Shown: positions 897 through 47,232, counted from the first letter of the stretch. The stretch is DNA of 64,000 bases from Macrostomum lignano (GCA_002269645.1 NIVC01001412.1:62001-126000); one strand, 5' to 3'. Made by a program: numbers and translations. The notes: generated from the letters alone by a model not told the origin.

Positions 897-2270
897 ATGT
901 CAAGTGGCCTTCTCCAAGCACCTGCTAGACGCTGGCCTGACTCATCTGGTGACCCACGAGATCATCCTGAAGGATCGGACACCGGAGTGGCGCTACCACC
1001 GCGCCGAATCCCGCCTCATCTGAAGGACAAACTCGACGCCCTGTTAGACGAGATGCTGGCGAAGCACATCATTCACCCTGCCTACTCGAGTTACAATTCG
1101 CCAATGCTCATCGTACCCAAGAAGGACGGCAACATCCGACTAGTCCACGACTTCAGAGCTCTCAACGACAGGTGTGTGTATCACTCGTATCTGCTGCCGC
1201 ACATCCAGGAAACCTTCGCGAAGCTTCGTGGTGCTCAGTGGTATTCCAGCTTTGACCTTGCTCAATGATTCTGGCAGATCCCGCTGCGCGACTGCGACCA
1301 GCACTTGACGGCATTCTCAGTGATCGATCGCGGCCAATTCTGTTTCAACGTTCTACCGATGGGTCTCCACGACAGTCCCGGCAGCTTTCAGCGTTGCATC
1401 AATAAGCTCCTGGACGGCCTGACGCCAAAGACTGCGCTTGGCTACATGGACGACATCGTGGTGCACTCAGTGACTTTCGAGGAACAGCTGGATAACTTGC
1501 GAACTGTACTCGTACTCCAGCGCATCATCGCAGCCAACCTCAAAGTGAAACCGAAGAAATGTCATTTGTTCCTCAAGGAGCTGCATTACCTAGGTCACGT
1601 CGTGACTCCCGACGGCCTGAAGACCTGTGAGGACAAGATTGCGCAGATCCGTGATTGGCCCGTGCCACAGTCCGTTACTCAACTGAGACGATTCCTAGGC
1701 CTCGCCAATTACTACCACAAGTTTTTCGACGGTTACGCTGGAGTGGCTGCGCCGCTGCATGCCCTGACGCGAAAGGACATTGGCAGCCTGCGGCAGCACT
1801 GGACTCCCGAGCATCAGCACGCGTTCGACACTCTGAAGAAGAAATTGTGTTCTACTGAAGTTCTCGCTCTGCCAGAGTTTAACTCGGATCCTGCTGTGAA
1901 GTTTGTCCTCGACACGGATGCCTCTGATATTCGAATAGGCGCTTGCCTTGGACAACTGCAATCCGACGGCGTCGAACGTCCAATTGCATTCTTTAGCCAC
2001 AAACTTCGCGATACTGAGAAGCGCTACACGGTCACGAAGAAAGAGCTGCTTGCAATTGTGGACGCTATGCGACATTTCCGTCATTATTTAATTGGCAAGA
2101 AGTTTGAAGTTCGATCCGATCATCGGGCCTTACTGTGGTTACTGAACCAGACTCAGGCCACAGGTATTTTAGGCCACTGGATCGAACGCCTAAGCGAGTT
2201 CCGCTTCCAGCTTAACCACCGCAAAGGCAAGGACCACGCCAACGCTGATGCCCTGTCAAGAAGACCGGAG
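897..2270 (+). pseudogene. pol: Reverse transcriptase and RNase H of Gypsy A
   Basis: SPMLIVPKKDGNIRLVHDFRALN, LPMGLHDSPGSFQ, YMDDIVV, LDTDASD, KELLAIV and SDHRAL. In-frame TGA at 1266-1268. Confidence 0.92.
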
Positions 2271-2370
2271 GGGCCGCCGATCTTCTTCGAGCATGGCCGA
2301 CTGCTAGAGCAACCTGGTCCTGGAGCCCAACCCGGTGTAGACGACAGCATCAAGACTGAGCGCCGTCATT

Positions 2371-2765
2371 TCCTGGAAACGGATTTGGACGCGATTCCCG
2401 AGGCCACTGCCTTAGCAGCCCTCCCGAAGACTGTCCATCCTCGCAACCTGGAGGCCAAGACTGACCTGGACGAAGACCTGGAAGCCACCGCACCAGCAGT
2501 CTTTCAGCACGACGCCCACCGCTGCAGTCAACGCCTGGAGACCGGCCTAGACGACAACCCAGAGGCCACTGCGACAACAGCCCTCTGCCGCGATGCCCAT
2601 GCCGCCCGCCGCAATTTGGAGACCAACCTGGACGAAGTCCGCGAAGCCACCGCTGAAGCAGACCGCCTTGACGACGCTCAAGACTTCCGGTCTCGAAATC
2701 TGGAGACGCCCATGAACAAAGATTCAAAGGCCACCGCACACGCAGCCCTTCTGATGACGGCCCAC
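2371..2765 (+). repeat. Five degenerate 26-29 aa repeats (LETxLDxxxEATA) in the RH-IN linker of Gypsy A
   Basis: LETDLDAIPEATA, LEAKTDLDEDLEATA, LETGLDDNPEATA, LETNLDEVREATA and LETPMNKDSKATA in ORF 1305-3179. Confidence 0.65.
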
Positions 2766-3016
2766 AACGCAACTCCAGGACAGCAATCTAACTACAACCC
2801 CTCTGAGCCTTTCGCTGAGATCTCTCGCCATGTTGACAGGGGCCAGAATCTCGCGCCAGCTGCAAGGTCGAAGCTCTGTCCCCCGGGCCGACAGACAGCT
2901 GCTCATCGCCTGTGCGGAAAGTCGAGTCCCCCTTTGCGACACCGCCCAGTGCAGGAGAAGACTCACCCAGATTTGATGACGACTGAGCCGACGACTACGG
3001 CTGCCAGCGACGAGGC

Positions 3017-4692
3017 ATGCTTCACGTGTTGCGTCCCGCCCTACAGCCTGGGCTGTGGGCTGAGTCGCCTGGGCTGTGCAGTGGAGGCATGTGCACTGCT
3101 CCATCTGCGGAATTTTCTGTCAAGAGAGCGACGAAGAGAACTTCGAAACGAGATCAACGGACGTACGCCGACGTTGTGAGACAAAGTCCCTCGGAGCAAC
3201 CTAATCCTGACGCCGACAAGATGGTGCCGTGTGATCGACCTGGAGCCATTAAAGCGGAGACTGCGGGAGTCATGACCCCTCAGCCATGCCGCGCCGTGCT
3301 CACTGATTTTCTGAAGCTGCCGATGACTCGCCAACAGTTCGTTGACGCCCAGCGCGCTGACCGAGCCATCAGCTACGTGCTCAACTTGGTCGAAAACGAA
3401 GCCCCGAAGCCTGAGTTCGACGCCCGGTTGCGACTGACGAAGCAGCAGCGGAATCTGCTCGGATACTACGAGAACCTGCAGGAGGACAACGGCCTGCTGC
3501 TGATTGACCTGTCCAATGGCCAGCAGCCGCCAAAGGTTGTTCTGTCTGAGGCCCTTGACGCTCCGTTGCTCCAGGAGCTCCACAGTTCGCCACTGTGTGG
3601 ACACCTCGGCGAGACGAAGACGTTACTGCGGCTACGAGAACGGTTCTGGAGACCCGGATTAGCCCGTGCTACCAAGAAATTCATCAGTAAGTGCCGCACA
3701 TGCCTTGAAAGTAAATCGCGACGGCGAGAGAGAGTTCCGGTCCAGAGCTTCCCAGTCTGCGAAGTTCTGGGTAGAATCCACTGTGATGTAGTAGGACCAA
3801 TCGCGCAGAAGAGCAAGAGCGGCAACCGCTACATCCTGACCTTATGCGATGCGACGTCGAAGTATCTATTGAGAAACCTACCCGATGTATCTACCCGATG
3901 AGAAACCAGAAGGCCAAGACAGTCATCAAGCTTCTGCAAGAGCGCTTCATCCCCGAGTTCGGTGTACCATGCTGGATCCACACCGACCAAGGCACCAACT
4001 TCACCGGCTCCGCCTTCAAGAAGTTCTGCGACCTGTTTGGCATTCGGCATACGACAACAACACCGTACAATCCAGCTTCCAACGGACAAGTCGAGAACCT
4101 AAACAAACAGCTGAAAAGTGTCCTCACCTGTCTGCTCGAGCGCAACCACAACGACTGGGACACCTTCCTCCCGGCCTGCCTGATGGCTCTCCTCTACAGC
4201 GTGCACCCGGTGACCGGTTTCACGCCTCTCTACTTGGTGTTCGGCCGTGACTTCCGACTCCCGATCGACAACGCATTGAAGAAGCTGCCAGAGTATGGTG
4301 ATCTGCCCGACTACGTCAAGGACTTCCAACGTCGCCTGGACGAGGCGACTGAGCTAGCCAAGGAGCGCCTGCATCTGCACCAGCAACTGCGAGACGAGCA
4401 CTACTCGAACCTGCCCGCCGCCAAGAAGCTTCAACCCGGTGATCTGGTATTTCTCAACAATCCGGCGCTCGAACCGGACGAGGCGGCAAAGTTTCATCGA
4501 CCTCGCAAAGCACTGTACGAAGTCGTCGAGCCCAAGGGCGAGGTCGTCTACAAGATCCGACGGAGACTGCCAAACGAGAGAGCTAGACGAGACGAACTAG
4601 TCGTCCATCGCCGGAACCTTCTGCTCGTGCGCGACGCTGACTACACGAGGACTTCCGATCCTGAAGCCAAAGAAGCGTCGGCGACCGCCTGA
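3017..4692 (+). pseudogene. pol: Integrase of Gypsy A (HHCC plus DDE core), frameshifted
   Basis: LHSSPLCGHLG...CRTC zinc finger, IHCDVVGP, IHTDQGTNF and NGQVENLN, split over ORFs 3017-3901 and 3844-4692. Confidence 0.92.
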
Positions 4693-5630: not shown

Positions 5631-8600
5631 TCAATCACAGCTCCCGAGTTTCGAGTAGGTCAGCTTCTCAGGTGGCCGTCGCCGGCGTGCAGGCTGCAGT
5701 CCGCAGGGCGCGTCTGGCGGCTCCGGCTCCGGGTGCTCCGCGCCGGTCCCGGTCGAGTCCGCAGCTTCAGCTGGCTCGGTCCCGGCTGCCGGACCGTCAG
5801 GTTTGTCGCTCTCGACTCGCCGGCCCCGCAGTTGGTCGGCATGACGGCGCCAGGTCAGGCCGTCGCTCGTTTCGACTCGGAAGCTCAGCGGTCCAGTCTG
5901 CTCGAGAACTTTTGCTGGTTGCCAGACCGCCGCATTAGGCCGGTAGTCCCTGGCCCAGGCCTCCGACCACGGCTCCTCCGGCAGCTCCCGCGACCGCCGG
6001 TCGTGCTGTCGTTTCTGGGCAGATTGCTCCCGCAGTACTCGATCCCGGGCTGACGGCCTCAGCAGGTCCATTCGAGTCCGGAGCTGCCGCTTCAGGAAGA
6101 GCTCCGCTGGTGTCCGACCGGTCGTTGGGTGCGGGCTAGCTCGGTAGCCCAGCAGCCAGTTGCACAGGCGGATGTCGAGGTCCGGCTGACTGCTTCGTGA
6201 CGCCTCCATGGCCATCTTGAACGACTTCACCAGCCGTTCCACCAGTCCGTTGGTCTTGGCGTGATATGGACTGCTTCTTGTGTGGCGAATTCCATTTGCT
6301 TTGCAGAAATCGCTAAATCCTTGACTGATGAATGCTGGACCGTTGTCCGATACCAGTTCTCTCGGCAGGCCCCATTGTGCAAACAACACTCGCAGCTTAC
6401 GAACCAGCTCGGCCGATTCGAGTGTTGACACGGCCTCCACATGCGGCCACTTTGAGTGCGCGTCGACTACGAGGAGAAACTGGCGGCCTCGAACCGGCCC
6501 GGCAAAGTCAACGTGGATGCGGTCCCAGGGCTGGTCTGGCCACACCCAGGGGTGCAGTGGAGCCAGCACCGGATGCAGCTTAACGGATTGGCAGGCTTGG
6601 CAGCTGCTGGCAACCGACTCGATGTCAGAATCCATTCCTGGCCACCAGACGAAGGTTCTGGCGACACTTTTCATCCGGGCCATGCCGAAATGTTTCACGT
6701 GTAACTCGCGCAGAACTCCAGGTCGCAACGCTTCCGGAACCAGCACGCGAGTTCCCCAGATCACGCAGCCGTCTTCCACGCTTAGTTCTAGTTGACGACA
6801 AAAGTAGGGCTCGAGCCCCGGGGGAACCGACTCTGGCCAGCCAGTCATTATCATCCGGAGAACATCTCGGAGCTCGTCATCTCGCTTTGTTGCTGCCGCT
6901 ACATCCGCCGCCGTCATTGGAAACTCGCCCGTCAGCTGACAGACCCGATCGTCGTCGTCTGGGCTGTCGTCCTTCATCTGCAGGGGCAAGCGAGACAGAC
7001 CGTCTGCGTTGCTGTGCTGAGCAGTCTTGCGGAACCGGATGCTGTAGCTGTACCCTGACAGCAGCAGTGCCCATCTCTGAAGTCGCCCTGCCAACCTTCG
7101 GTCCGAAAATCGTCGTCAACGGCTGATGATCCGTAGTTATCGTGAAGCTCCGGCTGAACAGGTACTGGTGGAACCGCTTGATGGCGAACACAATGGCGAG
7201 GGCTTCTTTCTCAATTTGCGAGTAATTTCGCTCCGCTGCTGACAGCGTCCTTGAAGCAAAAGTCACCGGCCGTTCCGAGCCGTCCTCCATCGTGTGGGAC
7301 AGCACCGCGCCGATGCCGACCGATGAAGCATCCGCGGCCACCACCACTGGAAGCTGCTCGTTGAAATGTGTCAGCACGCTGTCCGAACTCAGTTCTTGCT
7401 TAAGATGGTCCCAGGCTCGGTCCTCCGTCTCAGCCCACCGCCAGTCCGTCTCCTTCCTCAACAGTTGATACAGAGGAGCAGCGATTGTGGAGAAGTCCTT
7501 GACATGTCGAGCATAGTAGTTTGCGAGGCCCAAGAATGATCGCAGCTCTGATACTGTCACTGGCTTCGGGCTGTTGACTATTGCTTCCACCTTCTGAGGC
7601 AGCTTCTTGACTCCGTCCTTGCTCAGCAACGAGCCCAGGTATTCGACTTCTTCTTGCAGAAATTTGCACTTGATTCGCTTCAGCCGCAAGCCCGCCGCTC
7701 TCAGCCTGGTCAGTACCTCGCGAAGCGCTGCTAGGTGCTCACTCATTGACGGACCGGAGACCAGGATGTCATCAATGCGGCAACAGACTCCCGGCACGCC
7801 CTTCAAAAGTGTTTCCATCAGCCTCTGGCAAATCGCAGGAGCCGAACTGACGCCAAATGGCAACCGGAGGTACTCGAAAAGCCCTTTATGCGTGTTGATG
7901 GTCGTCAGCTTGTAGCTCTCTTCGTCGAGTGGAAACTGAAGATAACATTGTGACAGATCGAGTTTTGAGAACAGCTGACCCCGTCCCATCTGCTCGTAAA
8001 GCTCTTCAGGCGTAGGCAGCGGGTACTGGTCGATGTGGAGCTGAGGGTTCAACGTCAGTTTATAGTCGCCGCACAGTCGGACTCGAGCTCCAGCTTGTCC
8101 CGCACTGCGAATGGCACGGGTCTGGCCTTGCAGAATCGAGGCTGTGCGTCACTTTTAAGTCTCAGTGCGACTGTCTGATCCTTCAACTGCCCCAGGCTCT
8201 CGTCGAAAACATCAGCGAACTCCTCCAGCATCTGGTCGAGAGGCCCGCTGTTCTGCGCCGGCGCCTGGCTGATCTGGTTGGCAAACAACTGAGTCCAGTT
8301 GAGTCGCACTTTTTTCAGCCAATTGCGTCCTAGCAATGGGCAGGCTCCGGTCTGACTGGTGACCACCAGCGGCAGCTTATCATGCTGTCTTCCGTCGTAG
8401 TTGACCCTGACCTCGGCTGTTCCCTTGACTTGTATTGGCTCGCCCGTCCAGGTCCGGAGTCGCAGGCGTGTTGGTGTCAGCGGAGGTCGGCCGAGCTGCT
8501 TCCACACCGACTCCGGTACGAGGCTGACGCAGGCACCGGTGTCCAGCTGCATGGTGAGGGGCTGGTCATTCACCAGCAGGCTTACGCTGATCTTCTTGGC

Positions 8601-9398
8601 CGATGCAGTGACTTGCGAAATCCAGCCAGTTGCTGCTTCCTCCTCCACTTCCGTTTGCATTGCGTGCGCTGGTCCGCTCTCTGGCCGTCCGGCTTTCGTT
8701 GTGCTGGAGGCTTTCTTGGCTGAGCGGCAAACTTTCTGCAGGTGTCCAACTTTCCCGCAGTTGTGGCACTTTGCGGTCCTGAAGTGGCAGGCTGCCGACA
8801 GGTGGCCTTTCAATCCGCACCTGTAGCACGCCTTCGAGTCTGGCGCTACCTGCTGGACTGAGCTGACCTCTGAGCTCGATTTCCACTGCTCAGTTTCCGA
8901 CTTAGCAATCTCCGCCGCGAGGGCAACTTTTTTGGCCACATTCAGCGTGAGCTTCTCCTCCATCAGGAGTCGCTGCTGGGTCCGCTGGTCCCGAAGACCA
9001 CAGACGAAACAGTCTCGGAGAGCTTCTTCTCGAAACCCCCCGAACTCGCACGAATCGGCCAGATTTCGCAGCGCGGCCAGAAATTGAGCAGCCGTCTCTC
9101 CGTCCTTTTGTGCTCGCTTGTAGAACTTGAACCGTTCAGCGATTACTGGCTTCTTCGGTTTGAAGTACTTTTGAAGGTGCTCGGTGAGGGCGCTGTATTG
9201 CAGATCTGTTGGCTTGGTCGGACTGCAGAGATCCCGCAGGACTGCGTAGCATCGTTCGCCAATCAATGTCAGAAACACTGCCTTCTTCTTGTCGTCGCCT
9301 TCTATGCCGTTTGCAAGCATGTAAGAGTCCATTCGCTCTTGATAGGCGTCCCAATCTTTGCCTTCCTCGTAAGGTTCTAGTTGTCCAACTGAAGCCAT
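5631..9398 (-). pseudogene. gag-pol: gag-pol of the Mag-like element (two deletion-associated frameshifts)
   Basis: CYRCGLKGHLSAAC and CHNCGKVGHLQKVC knuckles, LDTGACVS, RIDDILV, ADASSVG, IHVDFAGP, SDNGPAF and GLVERLV. Sequence is missing near 8090 (KLELE to VRLCGDYK) and near 7095. Confidence 0.93.
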
Positions 9399-9399
9399 T

Positions 9400-9409
9400 C
9401 TCGTCGCCA
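9400..9409 (-). promoter_or_regulatory. Primer-binding site
   Basis: TGGCGACGAG lies 2 nt inside the 5' LTR and is complementary to a tRNA 3' CCA end. The tRNA was not identified. Confidence 0.8.
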
Positions 9410-9411
9410 AT

Positions 9412-9595
9412 TGTAATGAAGTCAATTCGCTTATTCTGGAGTAAACTCAGTTGAGGCAAAACCCTCCACGCTCTGTATATTTTATAGGCCAAGGGCACGG
9501 TGGCCCGCGCATGTACATTACCGTACGTACTGCTAGCTAGGCTTACTAAACAAGCTCCACCCCTACCACGCGGCCCCACCCCATAAGTCATGACA
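9412..9595 (-). repeat. 5' LTR of the Mag-like element
   Basis: Direct repeat of 5415-5598. Confidence 0.97.
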
Positions 9596-28316: not shown

Positions 28317-30328
28317 TTACATGCTTTGGTTTTTTATAAGTGCTAGTTCATCAATATCGAACTCAAAACAATTATAGTCAACGTCAAAAAGTAAACTGTT
28401 ATAATATTCAATTGAGTGTTCATGCTGTGGTTTGTCATCAAAATAGTTTTTAAAGAATGGTTTCATAACGCCGTTTTTATCCGGTTTTTCTCTTTTGTAT
28501 GTGTTAATGGTGGATGTATATGTTTTTGATATGGTTGAGTTATCTGCTTGAGGGATTGTTATACCACCTTCAAACGATCGTTTCCACGGAGCATTATTAT
28601 TTACTTTTATTGATTGTCCATCATACAAAGTTTTAAACGATGCAAAATTAATCTTATCATTTGCACATCCTTTAAATGTTTTTTTCTCTTTCATAATGAA
28701 ATCGTCTTTCAACAAAAGACAATATTTAATTTTAGGAGCGATAAAATATCCAAATATAATTCCGCCCTCTCCATAACCGTTTTTTCCTTGACTTAAATTA
28801 TTTCCGACATGCCCGTTTTTATTTAATGTATTCCAATGTTTTTTTTTATGTATATATAACGAATCCGTATCGCCGTAATAAATTTCTGGAGTCTTTGAGC
28901 CGTCTATAGACGTGATAAAATTTTTCATGATCCTTCTTGAATGAGCTAAAATAAATATCCCTAATTGCGCCGGACAAAGACCTGTTGTAGGATTATCGTC
29001 GTCTTCTACATATTCTTGTGTATCTTTCTTTTTTTCTACATAAAATAAGTCGTCACATATTTTATCATTAGACTTGATCGTGTCGTCGTATTCTTTTTTT
29101 AATGTTTGCAAATTCCAGAGATGAGTTGTGAAAATAATGTCTCTTTGTACCGTTTTACCATATAAGGAATTTAACAATGTTTTTACCAATTCAGAACCCG
29201 CCTCGTTATTTGCTTTTTTAAATACTTTTCTCATTTCAAAAAGGTTTGTAATATAAGTTTGAAACGGAGAGAAATCGAAATTTTTTTCATATACAATTCC
29301 GCTATATATCTTTAATATTTTCCCACCCATTCTTACAATTTCTTGTATGTCTACGGAACATAAGGTGTCGATTAACTTTCCGTTTCTAAGCCTATTTAAT
29401 GTTTTTGTTTCATTTGCTTTTGTTTCCGGATTATAAAATTTCTCTTTATCTTTAGATGGGAGATGTTGAAGAAAAACGCTGGTAGGATTCTCGTACATAA
29501 TCTTTAAAACCGCTGTTTTTGGTCTAAAAGTTTGTGAATTAAATTGTGTCAAAAAATCTTTTTCCTCGCTTATATAAAAAACTCTGCCTGTTTCTACTCT
29601 TGGATATTCGCTATCCTTATTAGACATGGCGGATGGGTACAATGAGACTCCATCAAAATTCATCAAGCAATCTGACACAGTACCCAATTGGTTTTTTAGT
29701 TTAATTGCGATTTTCTTTTTTTCTTCGATATCACATTTGAGATAGGTTGATATAACCTCGCATGCGTCGCTTGTTGGTGTTTTTAAATGATCTTTTACGA
29801 TGTCTACGATTATTTGAAAACAGTCGCTTTCGTATTTATTTATTAGTGCAAATACTCTGCCTCCTTTGACCGCGTCCCTCATAAACCTTCTTATACTCGT
29901 ATAAGGGTTGGTATGAGAGTGAACTGAAAATTCTTTTCTTAATAGTGTTTGGTATTTCATTTTTCAAGTTTGCTCAAGTCAAAATAATCTTCGATTTTCA
30001 ACGGAGATATTATTTCTTCAACTTTTTTAACGTAATTGGTTTTTTCTTTTGTCTTTAGGTATTGTTTCATTTTGTCTTCAACTCTAACAAAATCTTTAAA
30101 CCAACATTTTAATGTTAAACTCGAACATGTAAGAGTATCAAACATTGTCATTCCTCCAATTTCATATGCTATTTCGTTATACTTATGAATACAGGCGCAT
30201 AAAGAAATAATATCAAATTGTAAATATTCATACCATTCATCCATGCGCTCTAGGTAGTCGTGTTCGGTAATGTCATGAACCATTGAGGTTGTAGTGAAAC
30301 TACAACTTAACTTAGATTTGAATTGCAA
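28317..30328 (-). pseudogene. polB: Protein-primed family B DNA polymerase of Polinton 1 (N-terminus missing)
   Basis: FDGVSLYPSAM, KTLLNSLYGK, YYGDTDSLY and LQFDIISL. Frameshift near 29960; truncated at the Gypsy insertion. Confidence 0.93.
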
Positions 30329-30702: not shown

Positions 30703-33700
30703 TTAATAATAAATGTAATCATTATGGCGTCGGAATTGGACTCGGCGGCCGCTAGAGGTCGCTCTAGGAGGTGATGAGTCCCTCGGTTCTTCTGGTTTGG
30801 CGGCTTTTTCCGGCAGCGATTTCGCGGCCGGCTGAACAGCCGACTTCGGAAGCGAAAGTCGCGCCGGCTTGAGGCGATCGATAGAGACAGATTCGGTGTT
30901 GCCTGACGGTAGGAAAATAACGAAGAACTTGTCAGTTCGCTGTTTCACGCGATACGGCCCTGAGTACGGCGCCTCGAGCGGCGACCGCACGCGATCGACC
31001 CGAACCCAGACGAATTCAGCCATTTCCAGGTCCTTGGGTACGTAGCTCCGTGGTTCGTGCGTCTTCGCGTGTGGACTCGGTAACTCTGTCAGCAGTTCCT
31101 GCAGCCGTGTCCGAATGTCCGTTGGGGCGAGTGGTTCAGAAGTTAGGATGCGCGGAACCATCGGAAGCTCGCCGGTAACCCTGGTGAACGGTGATATTCC
31201 TTGGTCGTCAGGTGCGACGTGCATCGCGAGAAGAGCCACAGGTAGGTCTGTCAGCCAGTCATTGCCTCGAGCACGTAGCATCGTCTTCAGGGTGCGATGG
31301 GCTCGCTCGACCTTGCTATTGGTTTGAGGGTGGTAGGCCGTTGTGCGTAATCGATGAAAACCAATTGATGACGAGACCGAGTGAAAGAATTCTGATTCGA
31401 ACTGGCGCCCCCGATCAGTGATTACATACAGTGGCACTCCGTAGCGCGAGACCCAATACGATACGAATGCATGGGCGACTACTTCCGCGGTTATTGATTC
31501 CAGTGGTGTAGCTTCTAGCCAGCCAGTCGAGCGGTCGACCATCGTGAGAAGGTAGCGGGCAGACTGGTGGCCAAAGGTGGTAGCATTAGCTGGTGGAAGT
31601 GGTCCCACAATATCGATGTGTACCGCCTCAAAGCGATTTGATGGTAATGCGAAGGCCTGTTGCGGAGAGACAGTGTGGCGAGTGACTTTACTCCGTTGGC
31701 AGTCCTGGCAGTTCCAGCAGTAGGTCTTGATGGACTTGCGCATTCCGGGCCAAAAGTAACGTTCTGTGATGAGTTTTGCTGTTTTACGGTAGCCGAAATG
31801 ACCAAGTCGATGGAAGGAGGCAATTACGGCGTCGCGGAGAGACGGCGGAATGATCGGGCGAGGATACGGCGTTGACGTCTCACACCAAACGACGACGTCT
31901 TTGTCCAGAGAATACGATCGAATATTTGGTGCAGGTGAGAACGACTCCGGTCGTTGTGCTTCAGCGATACTGGGCAGATCAACAGGGAATTGGCTTGATG
32001 GGGCAGCGACTACAGCGACTGTTGCGATGTTGGACACGTGATCATTCACTGGGAAGTCAGGCAGTCGAGAAAGGGCATCAGCTATTACGTTGTCTGCACC
32101 GCGAATGTACTGGACATCTGCCACGTACTCGGACAAGACGGTCAAGTAGCGCTGATTGCGATCTGACGTAGTGGTGCGATTGGCGTGGAAGGCCTGAGCT
32201 AGTGGTTTATGATCGGTGAACAAGGTCACGCTCAGTCCTTCAATGAGGTTGCGGAAGTGCAACACTGCCAGGTACGCCGCGAGTAGTTCTCGGTCGAACG
32301 TGCTGTACATCCTTTGAGATGATGACAACTTCTTGCTGAACATGCCAAGAGGTGACGTTCCGGTTGAAGAGGTTTGATGCAGAACGGCACCAACACAGTC
32401 GGCTGAGGCATCAGTGTACAGGTGGTACGCAGTACAGTTGGGGTCCGGATGATGCAGCAGTAGTCTCTCTGAGAGAGCGTGTTTGATGTTTTCGAAAGAT
32501 TTCTGATGCTGCTCTGTCCATTGGAAGTTTCCTGCTGACTGTAGTGATGCAGTGAGTAGGTCTTGCAGCGGACAGATGCGGTCGGCAAAGTTGGGAACGA
32601 ATTGACGGTAGAAACCGACGACACCGAGGAAGCGCCGAAGTGCGTTCGAATCCGTGGGTGTCGGCCAGTCAGTGATTATTTGGATCTTCTTCTGGAGAGG
32701 TTTTATTCCTTCAGGAATCACGCGATGGCCAAGGGAATCTACCTCGGACTGAAAGAATTCGCACTTCTTCAAATGAACCTGTAGGCCGTGTGTTCTTAGG
32801 CGATCCAAAACTTGTTCCAAATGCGAGTAGTGGTCCTCGGGGCCGTAGCCCAGCGGTAGCGCAGCTGCTCTGGTGTGCCAGCGACCCAGGCTCGATTCCA
32901 AGTGCAGTCACATTAATTTCGGGCTGAATTGGAATCTCGGCTTGGCTCTGCTCGTGCAATTAACGGCCTTGAGAGCCAACCCCCCAAGGCGCAGTGAAGT
33001 GTACATGCCTAACGATAATATAAAATTAGGGCCGCTGTACACTCCTGTGTGAGTGTGTGCCTGCGTACGTATCCGCGCGCTTGTATGCCTGCTCAGGGGA
33101 GTCGGCGGAATGGGCAGTAATGCCTCTCGCCGGTTGTGTGCCTATGTCGCTTAAAGTGCGCCAGGGTGCACACAACCCCCCTGCCTCTAATAAAAAAAAT
33201 AAAGAGTAGTGGTCCTCACGAGTCTTTGAGAATATCAGGACATCATCGATGTAAGAGATGATGAATGACAGTCCGTGAAAAACAGATTCGATGAAGCGTT
33301 GAAATGTTTGTGCTGCATTCCTCAGGCCGAAGGGCATGCGTGTGTATTCGAACAATCCAAACGGTGTGGTGATAGCGGTTTTGCAAATATCCTCTTCGGC
33401 GACTGAAATTTGATGAAAAGCGCGAACAAGGTCTAACTTTGAAAACACAGTGCTTCCGTGTAGGTACCGAGTGAAGGTTTGAATGTGTGGAACCGGATAG
33501 TTCTCCGGCTTTGTTCGTTTGTTCAATTCGCGATAGTCACCGCACGGACGCCAGCCAGCTCCCTTGGGTGCCATGTGGAGGGGTGACGCCCAAGCGCTTG
33601 AGGATGGTCTGAGGTAGCCAGCATCGATTAGCTGCCGAAACTCCTGCTTTGCAGCCTGTAGTTTTGCAGGGTGCAGTTGCCGGGGTCGCAAGTGAACCGG

Positions 33701-34165
33701 TTGTCCACTACCAGTGTCATGCTTGACCTCTGAAGCTGGCGGAAGGGCTCCGCCTTCAACGAAAGAAAAACATTCTGCAAACTTTGTCAACAGCGTACTC
33801 GTCCGAGAATCCAGGTTGGGTGGCAGTTCTACCGACACATTGAATGGGCTACAATGAACATTTGAAATTGACAAGGTAACAGTAGACAGTCCTGTTTCTG
33901 AGTCTAGAACGTGTTTGCGCTGACAATCGACAACTAACCCATGGTGAGCCAAGAAATCGTAACCAATGATGGATTTCACCACTGACGCCACGAGGAAGGT
34001 CCATTGGAAGGCGCGACGCAAACCGCGGATTGAGACATCCAGTAGGGCCGACCCGTGAACTGGTATGGCGGCTCCGGTAGCAGTAATTAAACGAACGTTT
34101 GTATCTTGAACGAGTGCGTTAACGAGGTGAGGTGGAACAATGGAAACCGAGGCTCCGGTATCCAC
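30703..34165 (-). pseudogene. pol: pol of the CsRn1-like element, split by a SINE
   Basis: PR-RT in 33026-34165 and RT-RH-IN in 30703-32901; EDHYS is duplicated by the SINE TSD. Confidence 0.92.
32839..33203 (+). mobile_element. tRNA-derived SINE (365 bp)
   Basis: A box TAGCCCAGCGG, B-box-like GGCTCGATTCC, A-rich tail, 14-bp TSD GAGTAGTGGTCCTC (32825-32838 and 33204-33217). Confidence 0.9.
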
Positions 34166-40002: not shown

Positions 40003-40331
<329 letters not shown>

Positions 40332-40437
40332 TTATCCATATCTACGAATCTGTCTCTCTATCTAATATATTGATTTTGTAGCCAAGCCGAACCAACTAAG
40401 GCTCATTTATTTCAATTCGCCGGTGGCAGCTCTGCCA

Positions 40438-42779
40438 ATGGCGGACAATTGTGACGCAAATGAGCAAAAACAGATAAATTCCAGCAAAATGCGGCGCTCT
40501 CCGAGTTACACAGCACCGATACCGCGAGCCAAAATGGAAGATCTTTGGAAAAGTATCCTAACAGCAATGGCACCAGATCTGGTGTCAGCCTTCGGCAGGT
40601 CCGCAAGCCAAAGCAAAAGGCTCGATGGCACTGAGCTGGTGATCCTGATAGCCGTTAGGATCGAAAATGAAACGAAAATTTCTCAATACCTGCAGACGCC
40701 TTCTAACATTGACAGGCTCTTCAGCATCAATGAGATTACTTTTTCACCGCTTCACTATGCGTGTGAATTGGGAAAAGTCAAAGTTGTCGAAATGTTCATT
40801 AAAGGCGGAGCTGACGTCAATCGTCAAAGAAACACTGGCGAGTCACCTCTCTTCCTTGCATCACAGAATGGTCGCCACGAAGCTGTGAGTTTACTCATCA
40901 AAGCACAAGCTGACGTCAATCTTCAAGAAGTCCATGGCTGCTCACCTCTCTACATTGCATCAGGAATGGGTCACCACAAAGTTGTGAGCTCACTCATCAA
41001 AGCACAAGCTGACGTCAATCTTCAACGAAACACTGGCTCGTCACCTCTCTTCATTGCATCACAGAATGGTCACCACAAAGTTGTGAGATTACTCATCAAA
41101 GCACAAGCTGACGTCAATCTTCAAAATAACACTGGCTCGTCACCTCTCTACTTTGCATCACAAAATGGTCACCACCAAGTTGTGACCTCACTCATCAAAG
41201 CACAAGCTGACGTCAATCTTCAACAAGTCGATGGCTGCTCACCTCTCCTAATTGCATCAGGCAATAATTGCCACCAAGTTGTGAGCTTACTCATCAAAGC
41301 ACAAGCTGACCTCAATCTTCAAGCAAACACTGGCGAGTCACCTCTCTACTTTGCATCACAGAATGGTCACCACCAAGTTGTGACCTCACTCATCGAAGCA
41401 CAAGCTGACGTCAATCTTAAACGAAAGACTGGCGAGTCACCTCTCTCCATTGCATCAGGAATGGGTCACCACCAAGTTGTGAGCTCACTCATCAAAGCAC
41501 AAGCTGACGTCAATCTTCAACGAAACACTGGCGAGTCACCTCTCTACATTGCATCAGGAAAGGGTCACCACCAAGTTGTAAGCTCACTCATCAAAGCACA
41601 AGCTGACGTCAATCTTCAACAAGTCCAAGGCGGTTCACCTCTCTACTTTGCATCACAAAATGGTCACCACCAAGTTGTGACCTCACTCATCAAAGCACAA
41701 GCTGACGTCAATCTTCAAGAAGTCGATGGCTCGTCACCTCTCTACATTGCATCACAGAATGGTCACCACCAAGTTGTGACCTCACTCATCAAAGCAAAAG
41801 CTGACGTCAATCTTCAACGAAACACTGGCCAGTCACCTCTCTACATTGCATCAGGGAAGGGTCACCTCAAAGTTGTGAGCTCACTCATCAAAGCACAAGC
41901 TGACGTCAATCTTCAACGAAACACTGGCGAGTCACCTCTATACATTGCATCAGGGTATGGTCACCACCAAGTTGTGACCTCACTCATCAAAGCACAAGCT
42001 GACGTCAATCTTCAACGAAACACTGGCTCGTCATCTCTCTACATTGCATCACAGAATGGTCACCACCAAGTTGTAAGCTTACTCATCAAAGCACAAGCTG
42101 ACGTCAATCTTCAACAAATCCAAGGCCTTTCACCTCTCTACGTTGCATCAGGGAAAGGTCGCCACCAGGTTGTGGGCTCACTCATCAAAGCAAAAGCTGA
42201 CGTCAATCTTCAGCGAAAAAATGGCGAGTCACCTGTCTACATTGCATCAGCGCAGGGTCACCACAAAGTTGTGAGCTCACTCATCAAAGCACAAGCTGAC
42301 GTCAATCTTCAACAAATCCAAGGCGGTTCACCTCTCCACCTTGCATCAGGGAATGGTCACCACCAAGTTGTGAGCTCACTCATCAAAGCACAAGCTGACG
42401 TCGATCTTCAACAAGTCGATGGCTCGTCACCTCTCTACATGGCATCAGGGAATGGTCACCACCAAGTTGTGAGCTCACTCATCAAAGCGCAAGCTGACGT
42501 CAATCTTCAACAAGTCGATGGCTCGTCACCTCTCTATATTGCATCACAGAATGGTCACCACCAAGTTGTGAGCTCACTCATCAAAGCACAAGCTGACGTC
42601 AATCTTCAACAAGTTGATGGCTGCTCACCTCTCTACATTGCATTAGGAATGCGTCATGACCAAGTTGTGAGCTCACTCATCAAAGCACAAGCTGAGGAAA
42701 TGGGTGTACATTTTGATAGTCAAGAGTTGGCTAAAATTACATCTGCTGTGGAAGAGCCACCGAAACAGTTGGATTCTGG
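40438..42779 (+). CDS. ANK-cGLR gene, exon 1: 20 ankyrin repeats
   Basis: 33-aa xSPLYxASxxGHHQVVSSLIKAQADVNLQ repeats; donor GG|GTAAGA at 42780, phase 2. Upstream exons cannot be excluded. Confidence 0.9.
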
Positions 42780-43239
42780 GTAAGATTCATATTTTTTCTT
42801 TTTTGATTCTAAATAACTTTTTCAATAATTTTTTTCGGGTCTGAAGAAGATTGGGTAACTGTACAAGCATGCGGTCATTAGAGGCGGTTTTGACAGTTGA
42901 AAACTGAGAGCTTACTGAATGCTGAGTCAAGATTGATATAACATGGCTGATATCCAGACAAGTATATGTGCTCAGGGGGATTATCCGTGACTCAAAAGTA
43001 AATGCAATGCGAATGTGAAGATCAGGACCCATCTGCCGCCATCCCCATTATTGGCAGTGTCAGAAAATCAGGTTTCTTTCTGATTTACTCGAACCGCTCA
43101 GACCCGTTCGACCAATAAAGTTCCCTCGTAACCATTCGACTCTGCAGACACTCTGCATGGGCAGTCACGGAAAGTACCATTTTTCTGGAAGAAACCATGC
43201 ACACATTTTCTCCTGACACTCGGCTCACCCTTTGGACCT

Positions 43240-44180
43240 ACCTCCGGCCTGCCCACCCCACCTCCGTCCTGCCCCACCCAACCTCCGACCTGCCCCACCC
43301 CACCTCCGTCCTGCCCCCCCCACCTCCGACCCGCCCCACCCACCTCCGTCCTGCCCCACCCACCTCCGTCCTGCCCCACCCCACCTCCGTCCTGCCCCAC
43401 CCCACCTCCGTCCTGCCCCACCCCACCTCCGTCCTGCCCCACCCCACCTCCTTCCTGCCCCACCCCACCTCCGTCCTGCCCCACCCCACCTCCGTCCTGC
43501 CCCACCCCACCTCCGTCCTGCCCCACCCCACCTCCGTCCTGCCCCACCCCACCTCCGTCCTGCCCCACCCCACCTCCGTCCTGCCCCACCCCACCTCCGT
43601 CCTGCCCCACCCCACCTCCGTCCTGCCCCACCCCACCTCCGTCCTGCCCCACCCCACCTCCGTCCTGCCCCACCCCACCTCCGTCCTGCCCCACCCCACC
43701 TCCGTCCTGCCCCACCCCACCTCCGTCCTGCCCCACCCCACCTCCGTAATTGCCCCACCCACCTCCGTCCTGCCCCACCCCACCTCCGTAATTGCCCCAC
43801 CCACCTCCGTCCTGCCCCACCCCACCTCCATCCTGCCCCACCCCACCTCCGTCCTGCCCCACCCCACCTCCGAACTGCCCCACCCCACCTCCGACCTGCC
43901 CCACCCCACCTCCGACCTGCCCCACCCCACCTCCGTCCTGCCCCACCCCACCTCCGACCCGCCCCACCCACCTCCGTCCTGCCCCACCCACCTCCGTCCT
44001 GCCCCACCCACCTCCGTCCTGCCCCACCCCACCTCCGTCCTGCCCCACCCCACCTCCGTCCTGCCCCACCCCACCTCCGTTATTGCCCCACCCCACCTCC
44101 GTCCTGCCCCACCCCACCTCCGTTATTGCCCCACCCACCTCCGTCCTGCCCCACCCACCTCCCGCCTGCCCCACTCCACA
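43240..44180. repeat. 21-bp minisatellite (CCTCCGTCCTGCCCCACCCCA)n in intron 1
   Basis: About 44 units; G-rich minus strand. Confidence 0.97.
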
Positions 44181-44483
44181 TCCAATGCGGAATCATCGCT
44201 GAATCAACTCTTTTGCCACCTGCCATCCAAATCACAGACACTGCATGGGACACTCTGTATGGGACACTGCATGGGCAGTCATGGAAATTAGACAATTTTT
44301 CTGAAACAAACCATGCACACATGCGCTCAAAACTAAACTAAAATAACTAAAAGGATCAACTGAATGCAAAATAATCAGCAAAATCAATTCATGCACTATT
44401 CGGGAGAGCTGCCCTGTGCTACACAAATTAGTCAATTAACCCGTCTAGAACTGCAAGTTTTTCACCAATAACTCACATTTTAG

Positions 44484-44827
44484 ATGCAGTCCCAGCGACT
44501 CAGAGCTGAGCCATCAGCTGCACTCAGCACTGGAGCAGTCAGGCTTCACCGAATCCCGAGCCGCATTGCAGAGCGCGGCTGCGGATGCCCTGCAGCAGAT
44601 TCTGAGAAGTCGACTGAACAATAGTCCATTTTTTGTGGTCGGCAGCTACTCAGAAGGCTGGGGCAACAGCCTGACGACACTGGACGGCAGAACTGACGCC
44701 AATTCCGACATCGATGTGATTTATTTGATACCCGGCCGAGAATACCACCAGAGAGGCCTGTGTGAGTGCGATGGAGCTCCGGAGCAGCACGAGTTGGTGA
44801 ACGGGCACATTCAGTGCTCAGGATACA
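44484..44827 (+). CDS. ANK-cGLR gene, exon 2: NTase catalytic motif
   Basis: Acceptor TTTTAG|A and donor ACA|GTGAGT; VVGSYSEG...SDIDV; in frame with exons 1 and 3. Confidence 0.88.
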
Positions 44828-45760
44828 GTGAGTTCTCTCTTGGGAATTTAGATCGTCTGTAAGGTCTGTTAGTGATTGCTAGAGACTCTCGCAGTGCAGA
44901 TGTTTGATCTTAGTGTGTAAAGCATTGCTGCAGAAAATATTTGAAGGAGATCAGTAAGCAGATCTAAACAAGAGCCTGACTGTCCTGACAGTCTGTGTTG
45001 ACAACTTGCATTCATTATGTACAAGCTGTTGAAACCTGCAGATTTAATTATATCCCGCTGAAATTCAACCTCCGGATTTTTTGCATGCATTCTGAAATCT
45101 GAGGTCATGCTCAAACAAAAAGCTTGTTAATGTAGAGGTGAAGCCAACTTGGAGTAAATTTTTAATTTAAACTCGTAGGCAAGGAGACAGGATTAAAATG
45201 CAACTTTAAAGTAAAATGGCGATGGCGATGGCGATTGCCGTCTAAAACTGAGTAAAATTGCAAATTAATGATACTGTTTGAGTGCTCTGCAGAATCTATT
45301 TAAGCAGAGTAGGCGTGCAAAACATCAGCAAAACTAGTAAGGAACAAATGTGAGAAGTCATAAAATATTATTTAGTATATAAGGTACAAATTGGCAGTAG
45401 AAGTTATTGTTTCAGAACGTTCACAAAAAATGGTTCAACCATGTCCTTGAGTTCTGTGTGCTGGGGTTGGTCCACTCAGACAAGAATGTAAGAAAATTAG
45501 GCAGGATTATTTGTGCTAAATTTGAGTAGGATTGGTAAAAGTGAAGCAACGCTATGGAGGATTCAGTGAAGATTTGCGAATTTAAGCAGCTTTTTGCACT
45601 TCTAAGTAGGAAGACTCGAATTAAGGATGGTTGGTCGGTTTTGCCATGTATAGTTGTATGAGGGGTTTCTAAAGCTGCATAATGCCCGAGCAGTCTAAAG
45701 CTTCACTGCACAGACTCAAAGCTGTATATTGCCCGATCGGAAACCGAATCGTTTTTACAG

Positions 45761-47232
45761 CTAACAATCCTGCTGATGCGACACACGGATGCACGCTGAG
45801 GCCAGCGCTGGACAATGTCGACGCATGCCGTCTCTGCCGCTACCCGCCCATCGCGCCGCTGCTGCCAAACCGCGTCTCAAACGTCTCCTATCCTTTGTTG
45901 GAGGCTCTCCGGAAGGTTCTCACCTCCGCCTCATCGCCCTGCCACGTGGTGCACGCAGCCTCTCCTGACCGAGGAGGCGAAGAGCTCCGCGTGAGTACCA
46001 GCTTCCTGGAGAACCGGATGCTGCGAAGTCTCACTACCCTGCAAGGCCAACTGTTCGTCACACTCAAATACCTGGTCAAGAAGGTCATCTGTCACAAAGA
46101 TGGCTTCAATCAGCAAGGCTTGAGGTCCTACCACGTGAAGACAATCACCTTCCGAATGGTGGACGAGACGCCGGTCGAGCAGTGGAAGAAGGAGAACCTC
46201 GTGAGTCTCACGAGACAGTCGCTGCAGATGCTGCTCGACTGTGTGGAGAAGAGCCGAGAGCAGGACAGACAAACACCTGACACACCTGACCGATATCGGG
46301 GTCGCATCATGAACCATTTCTTTCTCAGCGATGCGGCCATCTACCTCAAGGGTGCGGACAAGGAGAGAGAGGACCAGCATTTGGACGGCATCATGAGCAC
46401 ACTGAGAACAGTAATCGATCGGCTGCCCCAACTGCTGCAGCAGTTCATCGGCAGTCTCAGACCTGTAAGTGACTCAGGCACATTCTACTTCCACCCGTTC
46501 CAAATCCTGCCGGATCTGAGGCCGGTGCCCCTCTCCGAGTCAACTAAGTCCAGTGCTCTCGAGTACTATCAGATCTACGACGTGGTGAGAGAGTGTCTGG
46601 TGCGTCTCTCACGCAGTGACTGCAGCCAGAGATCTCAGGAGTCGCTCACAGAGCTGATTGCCAGACTACCAGACTGCGCCCTCTCAGCACGGGAGGCTCT
46701 CGGAGCGCTGGCTTGCCTGAAGTTCGGCTACCGAGAAACTGCAGAGAGAGTCGTGAGCTCGTGCTCAGGTCACTCGGTGAGCAGAGGCATCGCCTGGTCT
46801 CGTGAGAAGTCGGCGACTGAAGCGACTGCGGAGTTCGTGATGGGTCATCTAAGAAGCTGCGACTCGGCGTGGAAGTTTTGCTTTGAGTTCGACCAGCGAC
46901 CGAAACTCGAGTTCTTGACGGGAGATCTGAGGGAGTGCTTTCCCCTCAAGTTGTCAAGCAGATGTGACCATTTCTACATGAACTTTGACGCTCTGCTGTG
47001 GGCTCTGCGGCTCGAGCTGCGGACTGATCGAGGGCGCGCTCAGGACTGGATCCGGGATGTGGCTGAGAGAGAGGACTCGGATGAGCAGGAGCTGCTGGTT
47101 GCCGCTTTGAATTCTTCGAATCTGGAGCAGTTTGAGGAAATAAAAAAGAAGCTGTGGATGATGAAAGCACGTCTTAATAATTGGCTGAAGGCGAGATTTT
47201 GGGAAAAATGGAGTGATCTGACAACCGTATGA
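45761..47232 (+). CDS. ANK-cGLR gene, exon 3: Mab-21/cGAS-like core and C-terminal helical region
   Basis: Acceptor TTTTTACAG|C; DNVDAC (third acidic residue), LRVSTSFLEN, LKYLVKK, SYHVKT, W..ENL and NHFF. Confidence 0.9.

Follow-up and report, generated by a model that had tools for sequence, protein, structure and literature searches.

A 64,000-nucleotide stretch of the Macrostomum lignano genome (GCA_002269645.1, NIVC01001412.1:62001-126000; hereafter the window, numbered from its first letter) raises the question of whether three plus-strand open reading frames (ORFs) that look separate, at 40423-42783, 44566-44862 and 45682-47232, are parts of one gene that fuses a long array of ankyrin repeats to a nucleotidyltransferase related to cGAS and Mab-21 proteins, and of what such a fusion might do for the animal. 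An earlier note on this DNA had proposed that the three frames are joined by splicing into a pattern-recognition enzyme, specifically a cGAS-like receptor (cGLR). Our analysis, which draws on sequence comparison and structure prediction, gives us high confidence that a three-exon gene encodes a 1385-amino-acid (aa) protein and that this protein is a member of the ankyrin-cGLR family. By all sequence indications, the locus is an intact and previously unlisted paralog within a family that has expanded in the Macrostomum lineage. How the protein would work is a far more tentative matter, and several competing explanations must be weighed.

Gene structure and domain content

When the exons listed in Table 1 are joined, they yield 4158 nucleotides, equivalent to 1385 codons plus a stop codon, with 0 internal stops. 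The junctions read TCTGG/GTAAGA...TTTTAG/ATGCAG for intron 1 and ATACA/GTGAGT...TTTTTACAG/CTAAC for intron 2, and all four GT-AG splice dinucleotides are intact. Exons were also mapped on the genomic loci of three annotated M. lignano paralogs, namely P0037 (PAA54193.1, BOX15_Mlig010266g1, 1378 aa), P0006 (890 aa) and P0001 (PAA67719.1, BOX15_Mlig022050g1). Exon 1 has a counterpart in P0037 and P0006, and an exon of equal extent to exon 2 is found in all three. Because introns occupy exactly homologous positions in these paralogs, split a codon at both sites (one a few residues ahead of SD(A/S)ELS, the other after NGH..xxG(F/Y)), and leave a window product that is colinear with the paralogs through both junctions with 0 gaps, the gene model is well supported by homology. 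Residues 95-1366 of the product align with residues 81-1372 of P0037, and full-length identity between the two is 51%. The in-frame joining, the intron boundaries and the phases that had been proposed earlier are all borne out by the junction sequences and by the paralogs.

The N-terminal portion carries the 20 ankyrin units that the earlier note had counted, of which 19 are in strict 33-aa register and one is a capping repeat. Tandem Repeats Finder reports a 99-bp period with 19.1 copies and 86% matches at 40809-42695, and the first 295 aa match the Pfam models Ank_2 (E = 5.9e-66) and Ank (E = 1.1e-45). With its tandem 33-aa repeats and these Pfam matches, the predicted product can be classed as an ankyrin-repeat protein. 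The repeats are unusually alike, with a mean DNA identity of 86% within the array.

The fold of the C-terminal part was examined by using an AlphaFold2 model of the 90%-identical paralog P0001, computed from an alignment in which the two window exons stood as separate rows. This model has a mean predicted local distance difference test (pLDDT) value of 78 and a predicted template modelling score of 0.78. When it was compared with the PDB by using Foldseek, all 27 matches at E <= 0.001 proved to be chains of MAB21L1, Sp-cGLR1, MB21D2 or cGAS, with MAB21L1 chains at the top, and the next matches were MiD51/MiD49 and bacterial CD-NTases. The model thus predicts the bilobed nucleotidyltransferase fold characteristic of cGAS and Mab21 proteins. 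Sequence profiles point to the same relationship. The window protein alone matches cGAS chains at E ~0.05, a profile built from eleven family rows finds cGAS in the PDB at E = 7e-7, and hhalign gives a probability of 82% (E = 1e-5) for the family against the human cGAS catalytic domain. The cGAS/Mab-21-like identity assigned earlier is upheld by these searches. Since the hhalign alignment covers the C-lobe only, the equivalence of residues in the N-lobe rests on the active-site motif, conservation and predicted secondary structure.

Among the Pfam models that had been suggested as a check, Ank_2 matches strongly, as given above, and the C-lobe model Mab-21_C (PF20266) gives a borderline score of 23.8 bits for the window protein against a cut-off of 24.1 (E = 5e-5). 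The N-terminal model Mab-21 (PF03281) has no match in the protein. PF20266 matches 10 of the 11 family rows, with a best E of 3.8e-6, which indicates sequence homology in the C-lobe. Residues 8-84 of the C-terminal region also show a weak match to an MTPAP-like palm (E = 0.13). A poly(A)-polymerase-like assignment is ruled out by the fold ranking and by the active site that is present. An assignment to the OAS proteins was likewise rejected, as there is no match to an OAS Pfam family and no OAS chain among the 50 PDB fold matches listed.

The enzyme motifs comprise VVGS, a 20-aa spacer, DIDV and, about 58 aa further on, VDA. In an alignment of paralogs that extends down to 34% identity, G53, S54, D75 and D77 of the C-terminal region (G834, S835, D856 and D858 of the full-length protein) are invariant, and at least 90% of the paralog sequences share D132 (D913) of the sequence RPALD. 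The Asp residue of VDA (D135; D916) varies among paralogs. Because D916 is not conserved and D913 is nearly invariant, the third carboxylate is the Asp of PALD. Therefore, the earlier description of the signature holds for the Gly-Ser pair, the spacer and DIDV, but its third Asp was placed three residues off. With this adjustment, the sequence contains the complete active-site motif h[G/S]S ... [D/E]h[D/E] ... [D/E]. In the P0001 model, the Gly-Ser pair lies where strand 1 ends, Asp-x-Asp where strand 2 begins, and the third Asp where a later strand begins. The 20-aa length of the spacer is family-wide, and the model has pLDDT values below 50 in this segment. A MAB21L1-type non-catalytic assignment was set aside on the grounds that active-site residues are present and conserved, although MAB21L1 tops the fold matches.

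Six His and Cys residues of the C-terminal region, encoded by exons 2 and 3, are also invariant across the paralogs (H88, C93, C95, C140, C175 and H176). They fall in the motifs YHxxxxCxC, RLCxYPP and PCHVVHAA between the Asp-x-Asp strand and the C-lobe, and could form a structural metal site that is positioned differently from the zinc thumb of vertebrate cGAS.

The Mab21 domain ends with HFFLSDAAIYLKG and is followed by 293 residues that are conserved in the M. lignano family. The AlphaFold2 model of this extension has a mean pLDDT of 74.6, and a Foldseek search of the PDB with it returned nothing below E = 0.47, with weak helical-repeat matches only. Of the listed library proteins whose best match falls in the extension segment of the profile, six were looked up; each is from M. 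lignano.

Proposed ligand sensing and catalysis, and competing explanations

What the ankyrin array might contribute is suggested by where its repeats differ. Variation from repeat to repeat is concentrated at register positions 2, 3, 4, 6, 10, 11, 14, 15 and 22. These nine most variable positions cover five of the six target-binding positions that are randomised in designed ankyrin binders (numbering as reported by Binz et al. 2003; P = 0.003 by the hypergeometric distribution), and they lie on the usual ankyrin binding surface. The differences between repeats occur more often at codon positions 1 and 2 than at position 3. The pooled dN/dS between repeats is 1.95. The repeat pairs behind this value depend on one another, and it is confounded by the gene conversion that is likely within such arrays; it fits a diversified binding face but is not a clean test of selection.

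A second indication comes from the charge of the enzyme core. The predicted isoelectric point (pI) is 6.6 for the window copy and 6.4 for its closest paralog, P0001. In the survey by Li et al., cGLRs that sense double-stranded DNA (dsDNA) or double-stranded RNA (dsRNA) have pI values above 8.5, and non-nucleic-acid ligands were proposed for acidic cGLRs (PMC9980059).

It is the placement of the variable positions on the ankyrin binding surface, together with an enzyme core that is not basic, that leads to the idea of an ankyrin sensor. The protein would be inactive at rest, and its ankyrin solenoid, with diversified residues on the concave face, would bind a ligand from a pathogen or from the host, either a protein or some other molecule that is not a nucleic acid. 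Ligand binding would then relieve autoinhibition or drive clustering of the nucleotidyltransferase, and the enzyme would make a nucleotide second messenger that acts on a receptor downstream. This receptor might be STING, as the earlier note had assumed, or another protein if the animal lacks STING. On present sequence evidence, the best-supported reading is that of a cGLR in which the ankyrin solenoid serves as a ligand-binding or regulatory module. The more specific proposal, in which the repeat array and not the binding of nucleic acids would determine which ligand is recognised, is plausible on circumstantial support. We hold the mechanism in which the array is the sensor and the enzyme is active only tentatively, with somewhat less than even confidence. 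If gene, family and mechanism are taken together as one explanation, then we judge its prospects to be evenly balanced, which is a compromise between the parts.

A considerable list of observations weighs against this explanation. The gene model of this copy rests on homology, and the exact sequence (full model, 516-aa ORF and ankyrin ORF) was not found in a collection of 15 billion proteins. The introns are filled with repeats and are 9-20 times longer than those in P0037 and P0006, and the second donor is without the usual G at position -1. PF03281 is without a match and the Mab-21_C score is just under its cut-off. The 20-aa spacer must be set against about 10-11 residues in cGAS and mollusc cGLRs, with about 10 residues in the mollusc sequences given by Li et al. 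in their Table S3 (PMC9980059). The other paralogs have core pI values of 7.3-8.9, which makes the charge argument specific to the window copy. Planarian flatworms are reported to be without cGAS and STING (PMC13563047). Furthermore, Li et al. screened 140 proteins, five of them M. lignano relatives (Table S3, numbers 89-93), and the only active enzymes that they describe are from insects, anemones, molluscs, hydras and corals (PMC9980059).

Some of these points would sit more comfortably with a protein that makes no nucleotide messenger at all and instead acts as a Mab21-type scaffold, with the ankyrin array and the helical tail as interaction modules. Models for such a role include MAB21L1, MiD49/MiD51 and shrimp Mab21 proteins reported to activate IKK-epsilon. 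The ranking of MAB21L1 chains as top Foldseek matches, the poorly modelled 10-aa insertion in the catalytic loop that is present family-wide, the record of 0 of 5 screened relatives among the active enzymes (PMC9980059) and the reported absence of STING from planarians (PMC13563047) are all in keeping with this possibility, as is the non-canonical Mab21 signalling that has been reported in crustaceans (PMC12928593). However, paralogs at 34-59% identity keep the Gly-Ser pair, Asp-x-Asp and the third Asp unchanged or almost unchanged, which is hard to explain without catalysis or the binding of nucleotides or metals, and MAB21L1-type proteins are without such an active site (PMC9980059). Inactivity in vitro is also to be expected if the activating ligand has not been identified, a limitation that is named by Li et al. 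(PMC9980059). We consider a purely non-enzymatic role rather unlikely, though it retains some weight.

If the protein is indeed an active cGLR, it might still be a sensor of nucleic acids that binds dsRNA or dsDNA on its nucleotidyltransferase domain, as do cGAS and Drosophila cGLR1, such that the ankyrin array serves only in localisation, regulation or partner recruitment. The cGLR ligands that have been identified to date are nucleic acids without exception (PMC9980059), and several paralog cores are basic, with pI values of 8.1-8.9. On the other side, the cores of the window copy and P0001 have pI values below those reported for known sensors, the active enzymes described do not include the relatives that were given poly I:C and 45-bp dsDNA (PMC9980059), and the repeat-to-repeat variation is located on the ankyrin binding face. 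On balance, we regard direct nucleic-acid sensing as unlikely.

A bolder extension of the ankyrin-sensor idea is that these proteins form a protein-sensing branch of cGLRs, in which a hypervariable ankyrin module, a cGAS-fold enzyme with an unusual extended catalytic loop and a Macrostomum-specific helical C-terminal domain, serving as effector or oligomerisation module, operate without canonical STING. We find this doubtful from the sequences in hand. If true, it would mean that a STING-independent pathway exists in a phylum for which loss of cGAS-STING signalling is otherwise assumed, and it would liken the ankyrin solenoid to the repeat arrays of other innate immune receptors.

Introns, constraint and surroundings of this copy

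The window introns measure 1704 and 933 nucleotides, compared with 83-108 nucleotides in P0037 and P0006 and 373 nucleotides at the locus of P0001 (M. lignano NIVC01001460.1, here L001); the homologues of intron 1 in paralogs are 96-108 nucleotides long. About 600 nucleotides of intron 2 (44885-45489) are missing from L001. At the second donor, the last base of exon 2 is A rather than the G of the paralogs, which yields Thr instead of Ala. Compared with the P0001 gene, the window copy has a dS of 0.09 and a dN/dS of 0.53 over 590 codons. This ratio suggests moderate constraint, as is common for expanded immune-type families.

These features raise the question of whether the locus could be a recent duplicate among transposons, either a young pseudogene or unexpressed, that still has an open frame only for lack of time. 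The window is otherwise full of retrotransposon and Maverick/Polinton-like genes, a (TCTA)90 microsatellite lies directly upstream, the introns are swollen, the second donor has undergone a G-to-A change at position -1, the protein is missing from the 15-billion-protein collection, and the constraint is only moderate. Against such decay, 4158 nucleotides in three exons carry no stop or frameshift, all splice dinucleotides are kept within the donors GTAAGA (intron 1) and GTGAGT (intron 2, the consensus), dN/dS is below 1, and the catalytic residues along with all family-invariant residues checked are retained. We therefore view a dead or silent copy as quite improbable, and continue to favour an intact gene.

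Several further observations concern the DNA in and around the gene. Intron 1 holds a C-rich 21-bp minisatellite (ACCTCCGTCCTGCCCCACCCC) at 43240-44183, with about 45 copies that create spurious long ORFs on both strands, and the same minisatellite occurs with only 3.6 copies at 9607-9681 of L001. The (TCTA)n microsatellite, with about 90 copies at 40003-40364, ends 74 nucleotides upstream of the start codon and reads as a long ORF of SIYL repeats. Window DNA and L001 are 80-88% identical in exons, introns and flanks alike. The downstream region is also common to both (window 47794-51827 and L001 12522-17175, 80-87% identity) and has within it a segment that occurs twice (window 48.5-49.4 kb and 50.7-51.8 kb). 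Because this downstream region is shared, the gene duplication was segmental and not the product of retrocopying. The ankyrin exon of P0001 was sought upstream in L001 and not found; a 118-bp satellite of about 79 copies with 99% identity fills the 9.3 kb upstream of P0001 exon 2 (L001 1-9294), which probably accounts for the annotation of the P0001 gene model as partial and without an ankyrin exon.

Elsewhere in the window, the other long ORFs with a Pfam match are all transposon-derived or Maverick/Polinton-like (Table 1), and seven long ORFs are without a Pfam match. No further Mab21 or ankyrin fragments were found when the rest of the window was searched for them. Each of the Ty3/gypsy-like pol regions is broken into two or three overlapping ORFs, a sign of frameshifts, and the element with a weak tyrosine-recombinase match may be DIRS-like. 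The Maverick/Polinton-like genes, which were read ORF by ORF, are located in blocks of low GC content (31-40%), and the Ty3/gypsy- and DIRS-like elements are located in blocks of 51-58% GC. It had been suggested that the ankyrin gene is the only clearly intact host gene in a field of decayed elements. That it is the sole clear host gene seems reasonable, but decay is only partial, as several of the element ORFs are long.

Table 1. Positions in the window of the ankyrin-nucleotidyltransferase gene, its parts and the neighbouring elements
Feature	Position	Strand	Remarks
Exon 1	40438..42779	+	First ATG at 40438; encodes aa 1-780 and ends 2 nt into codon 781; N-terminus of ~100 aa without repeats, then the 20 ankyrin repeats and a linker of 30 aa
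Ankyrin array	40741..42690	+	N-terminal capping repeat and 19 regular 33-aa units
Intron 1	42780..44483	+	Phase 2, GT..AG, donor GT at 42780; 1704 nt; 21-bp minisatellite inside
Exon 2	44484..44827	+	N-terminal helices and first portion of nucleotidyltransferase core
Gly-Ser codons	44641-44646	+	G834, S835
Asp-Ile-Asp codons	44707-44715	+	D856, D858
Intron 2	44828..45760	+	Phase 1, GTGAGT..ACAG, 933 nt
Exon 3	45761..47232	+	Remaining Mab21/cGAS-type core, C-terminal helical extension, stop TGA at 47230-47232
Conserved third Asp codon	45811-45813	+	D913
Mab-21_C segment (helix-hairpin-helix/H2TH-like)	46060..46254	+	cGAS-like motifs LKYLVKK, SYHVKT
Family-specific C-terminal extension	46351..47229	+	293 aa, mostly helical by prediction
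Ty3/gypsy-like pol	1305-4692	+	Protease, reverse transcriptase, RNase H, integrase
Ty3/gypsy-like pol	5631-9425	-	Protease, reverse transcriptase, RNase H, integrase
Reverse transcriptase/RNase H ORF	21034-23291	+	Beside weak tyrosine-recombinase match
Protein-primed type-B DNA polymerase	28317-29960	-	Maverick/Polinton-like
Ty3/gypsy-like pol	30703-34165	-	Protease, reverse transcriptase, RNase H, integrase
Double-jelly-roll capsid-like domain	53341-54627	-	Maverick/Polinton-like
545-aa ORF	59315-60952	-	No Pfam match; adjoins polymerase ORF 60980-62041
Protein-primed type-B DNA polymerase	60980-62041	-	Maverick/Polinton-like; also endonuclease VII-like match

Family size and comparison with known systems

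The earlier note had asked how many paralogs exist. A search with the 604-aa product of exons 2 and 3 returned 32 proteins, every one from M. lignano (best identity 89%), and many of them combine ankyrin and Mab-21 domains. At E <= 0.001, an exhaustive search with a profile gave 1035 proteins, with 88 clusters (50% identity) at E < 1e-30, which puts the family at no fewer than 88 such clusters. The strong matches that were looked up are from M. lignano throughout and include ankyrin fusions of 1378-1585 aa (1378, 1420 and 1575 among them), and the weaker matches, where the source is named, are Mab21 proteins of bivalves and sea anemones. Two of the M. lignano proteins, P0033 (1346 aa, with two matched stretches) and P0015 (1036 aa), are predicted to contain two complete nucleotidyltransferase units, and could be true tandem-domain enzymes or the result of merging neighbouring genes.

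This architecture is not a novel one, contrary to what the earlier note had implied. In 2023, Li et al. described cGLRs with ankyrin or tetratricopeptide-repeat modules or with tandem cGLR domains, and in their Table S2 Ank_2 domains are assigned to accessions that begin with PAA (PMC9980059). The M. lignano proteins found in this analysis carry the PAA prefix, and both ankyrin-cGLR fusions and the M. lignano family are already present in that work. Many cGLRs were found to be inactive in vitro, probably for want of the right ligand, and no activity, ligand or product was reported for the flatworm members (PMC9980059).

It seems appropriate, then, to ask what the present locus contributes. A single locus adds little: its family numbers dozens of copies and is both publicly annotated and included in the cGLR catalogue, and the locus is not new in kind. 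The value is to be found in the family, which is the only large cGLR expansion observed to date in flatworms, and which pairs an enzyme with long diversified ankyrin arrays and an uncharacterised C-terminal domain. Planarians and parasitic flatworms are reported to be without cGAS-type cGLRs. Because M. lignano is amenable to RNA interference and transgenesis, it might offer a workable system in which to learn what repeat-fused cGLRs sense.

The closest relatives of the window gene are its M. lignano paralogs, such as P0037, P0001 and PAA93879.1 (1575 aa), whose entries are named only as ‘hypothetical protein’, ‘ANK_REP_REGION’ or ‘Mab-21 domain-containing’. They have the same order of N-terminus, ankyrin array, linker, nucleotidyltransferase and helical tail, the same three-exon layout with split-codon junctions, and the same motifs, including the 20-aa spacer. 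P0001 is 89-90% identical to the window protein in exons 2 and 3. The window copy differs in its far longer introns and its unusually similar repeats. The M. lignano proteins that were screened by Li et al. share with it GS-x20-DxD, RVSTSFLE, YHxKT, HFF and the C-terminal extension (PMC9980059). The other ankyrin-fused cGLRs described there, for example from the coral Stylophora pistillata, belong to the same class in that an ankyrin array is joined to a cGLR nucleotidyltransferase (PMC9980059), but the coral fusions are distant in sequence and can be likened to the window gene by architecture class only.

Human cGAS, Sp-cGLR1 (8gjy), MB21D2 (7lt1) and MAB21L1 (5eom) have the bilobed fold in common with the P0001 model, with target-normalised TM-scores of 0.43-0.56 and E values from 2e-5 to 8e-4, but identity to these proteins is only 12-17% and the flatworm catalytic loop is longer. 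Motifs of the C-lobe can be aligned between human cGAS and the family (WRLSFSH with LRVSTSF, LKYLL with LKYLV, SYHVKT in both, and NYFIP with NHFFL). Unlike cGAS, the window protein has no vertebrate-type zinc thumb in the aligned region, and its core is acidic to neutral. Compared with these four proteins, it has an additional 780-aa ankyrin N-terminus and a 290-aa C-terminal domain, and it keeps the active-site residues that MAB21L1 is without. Finally, some members of the M. lignano family (P0033 and P0015) are predicted to be double in the manner of tandem cGLRs or OAS2/OAS3-type enzymes, whereas the window gene carries a single nucleotidyltransferase unit.

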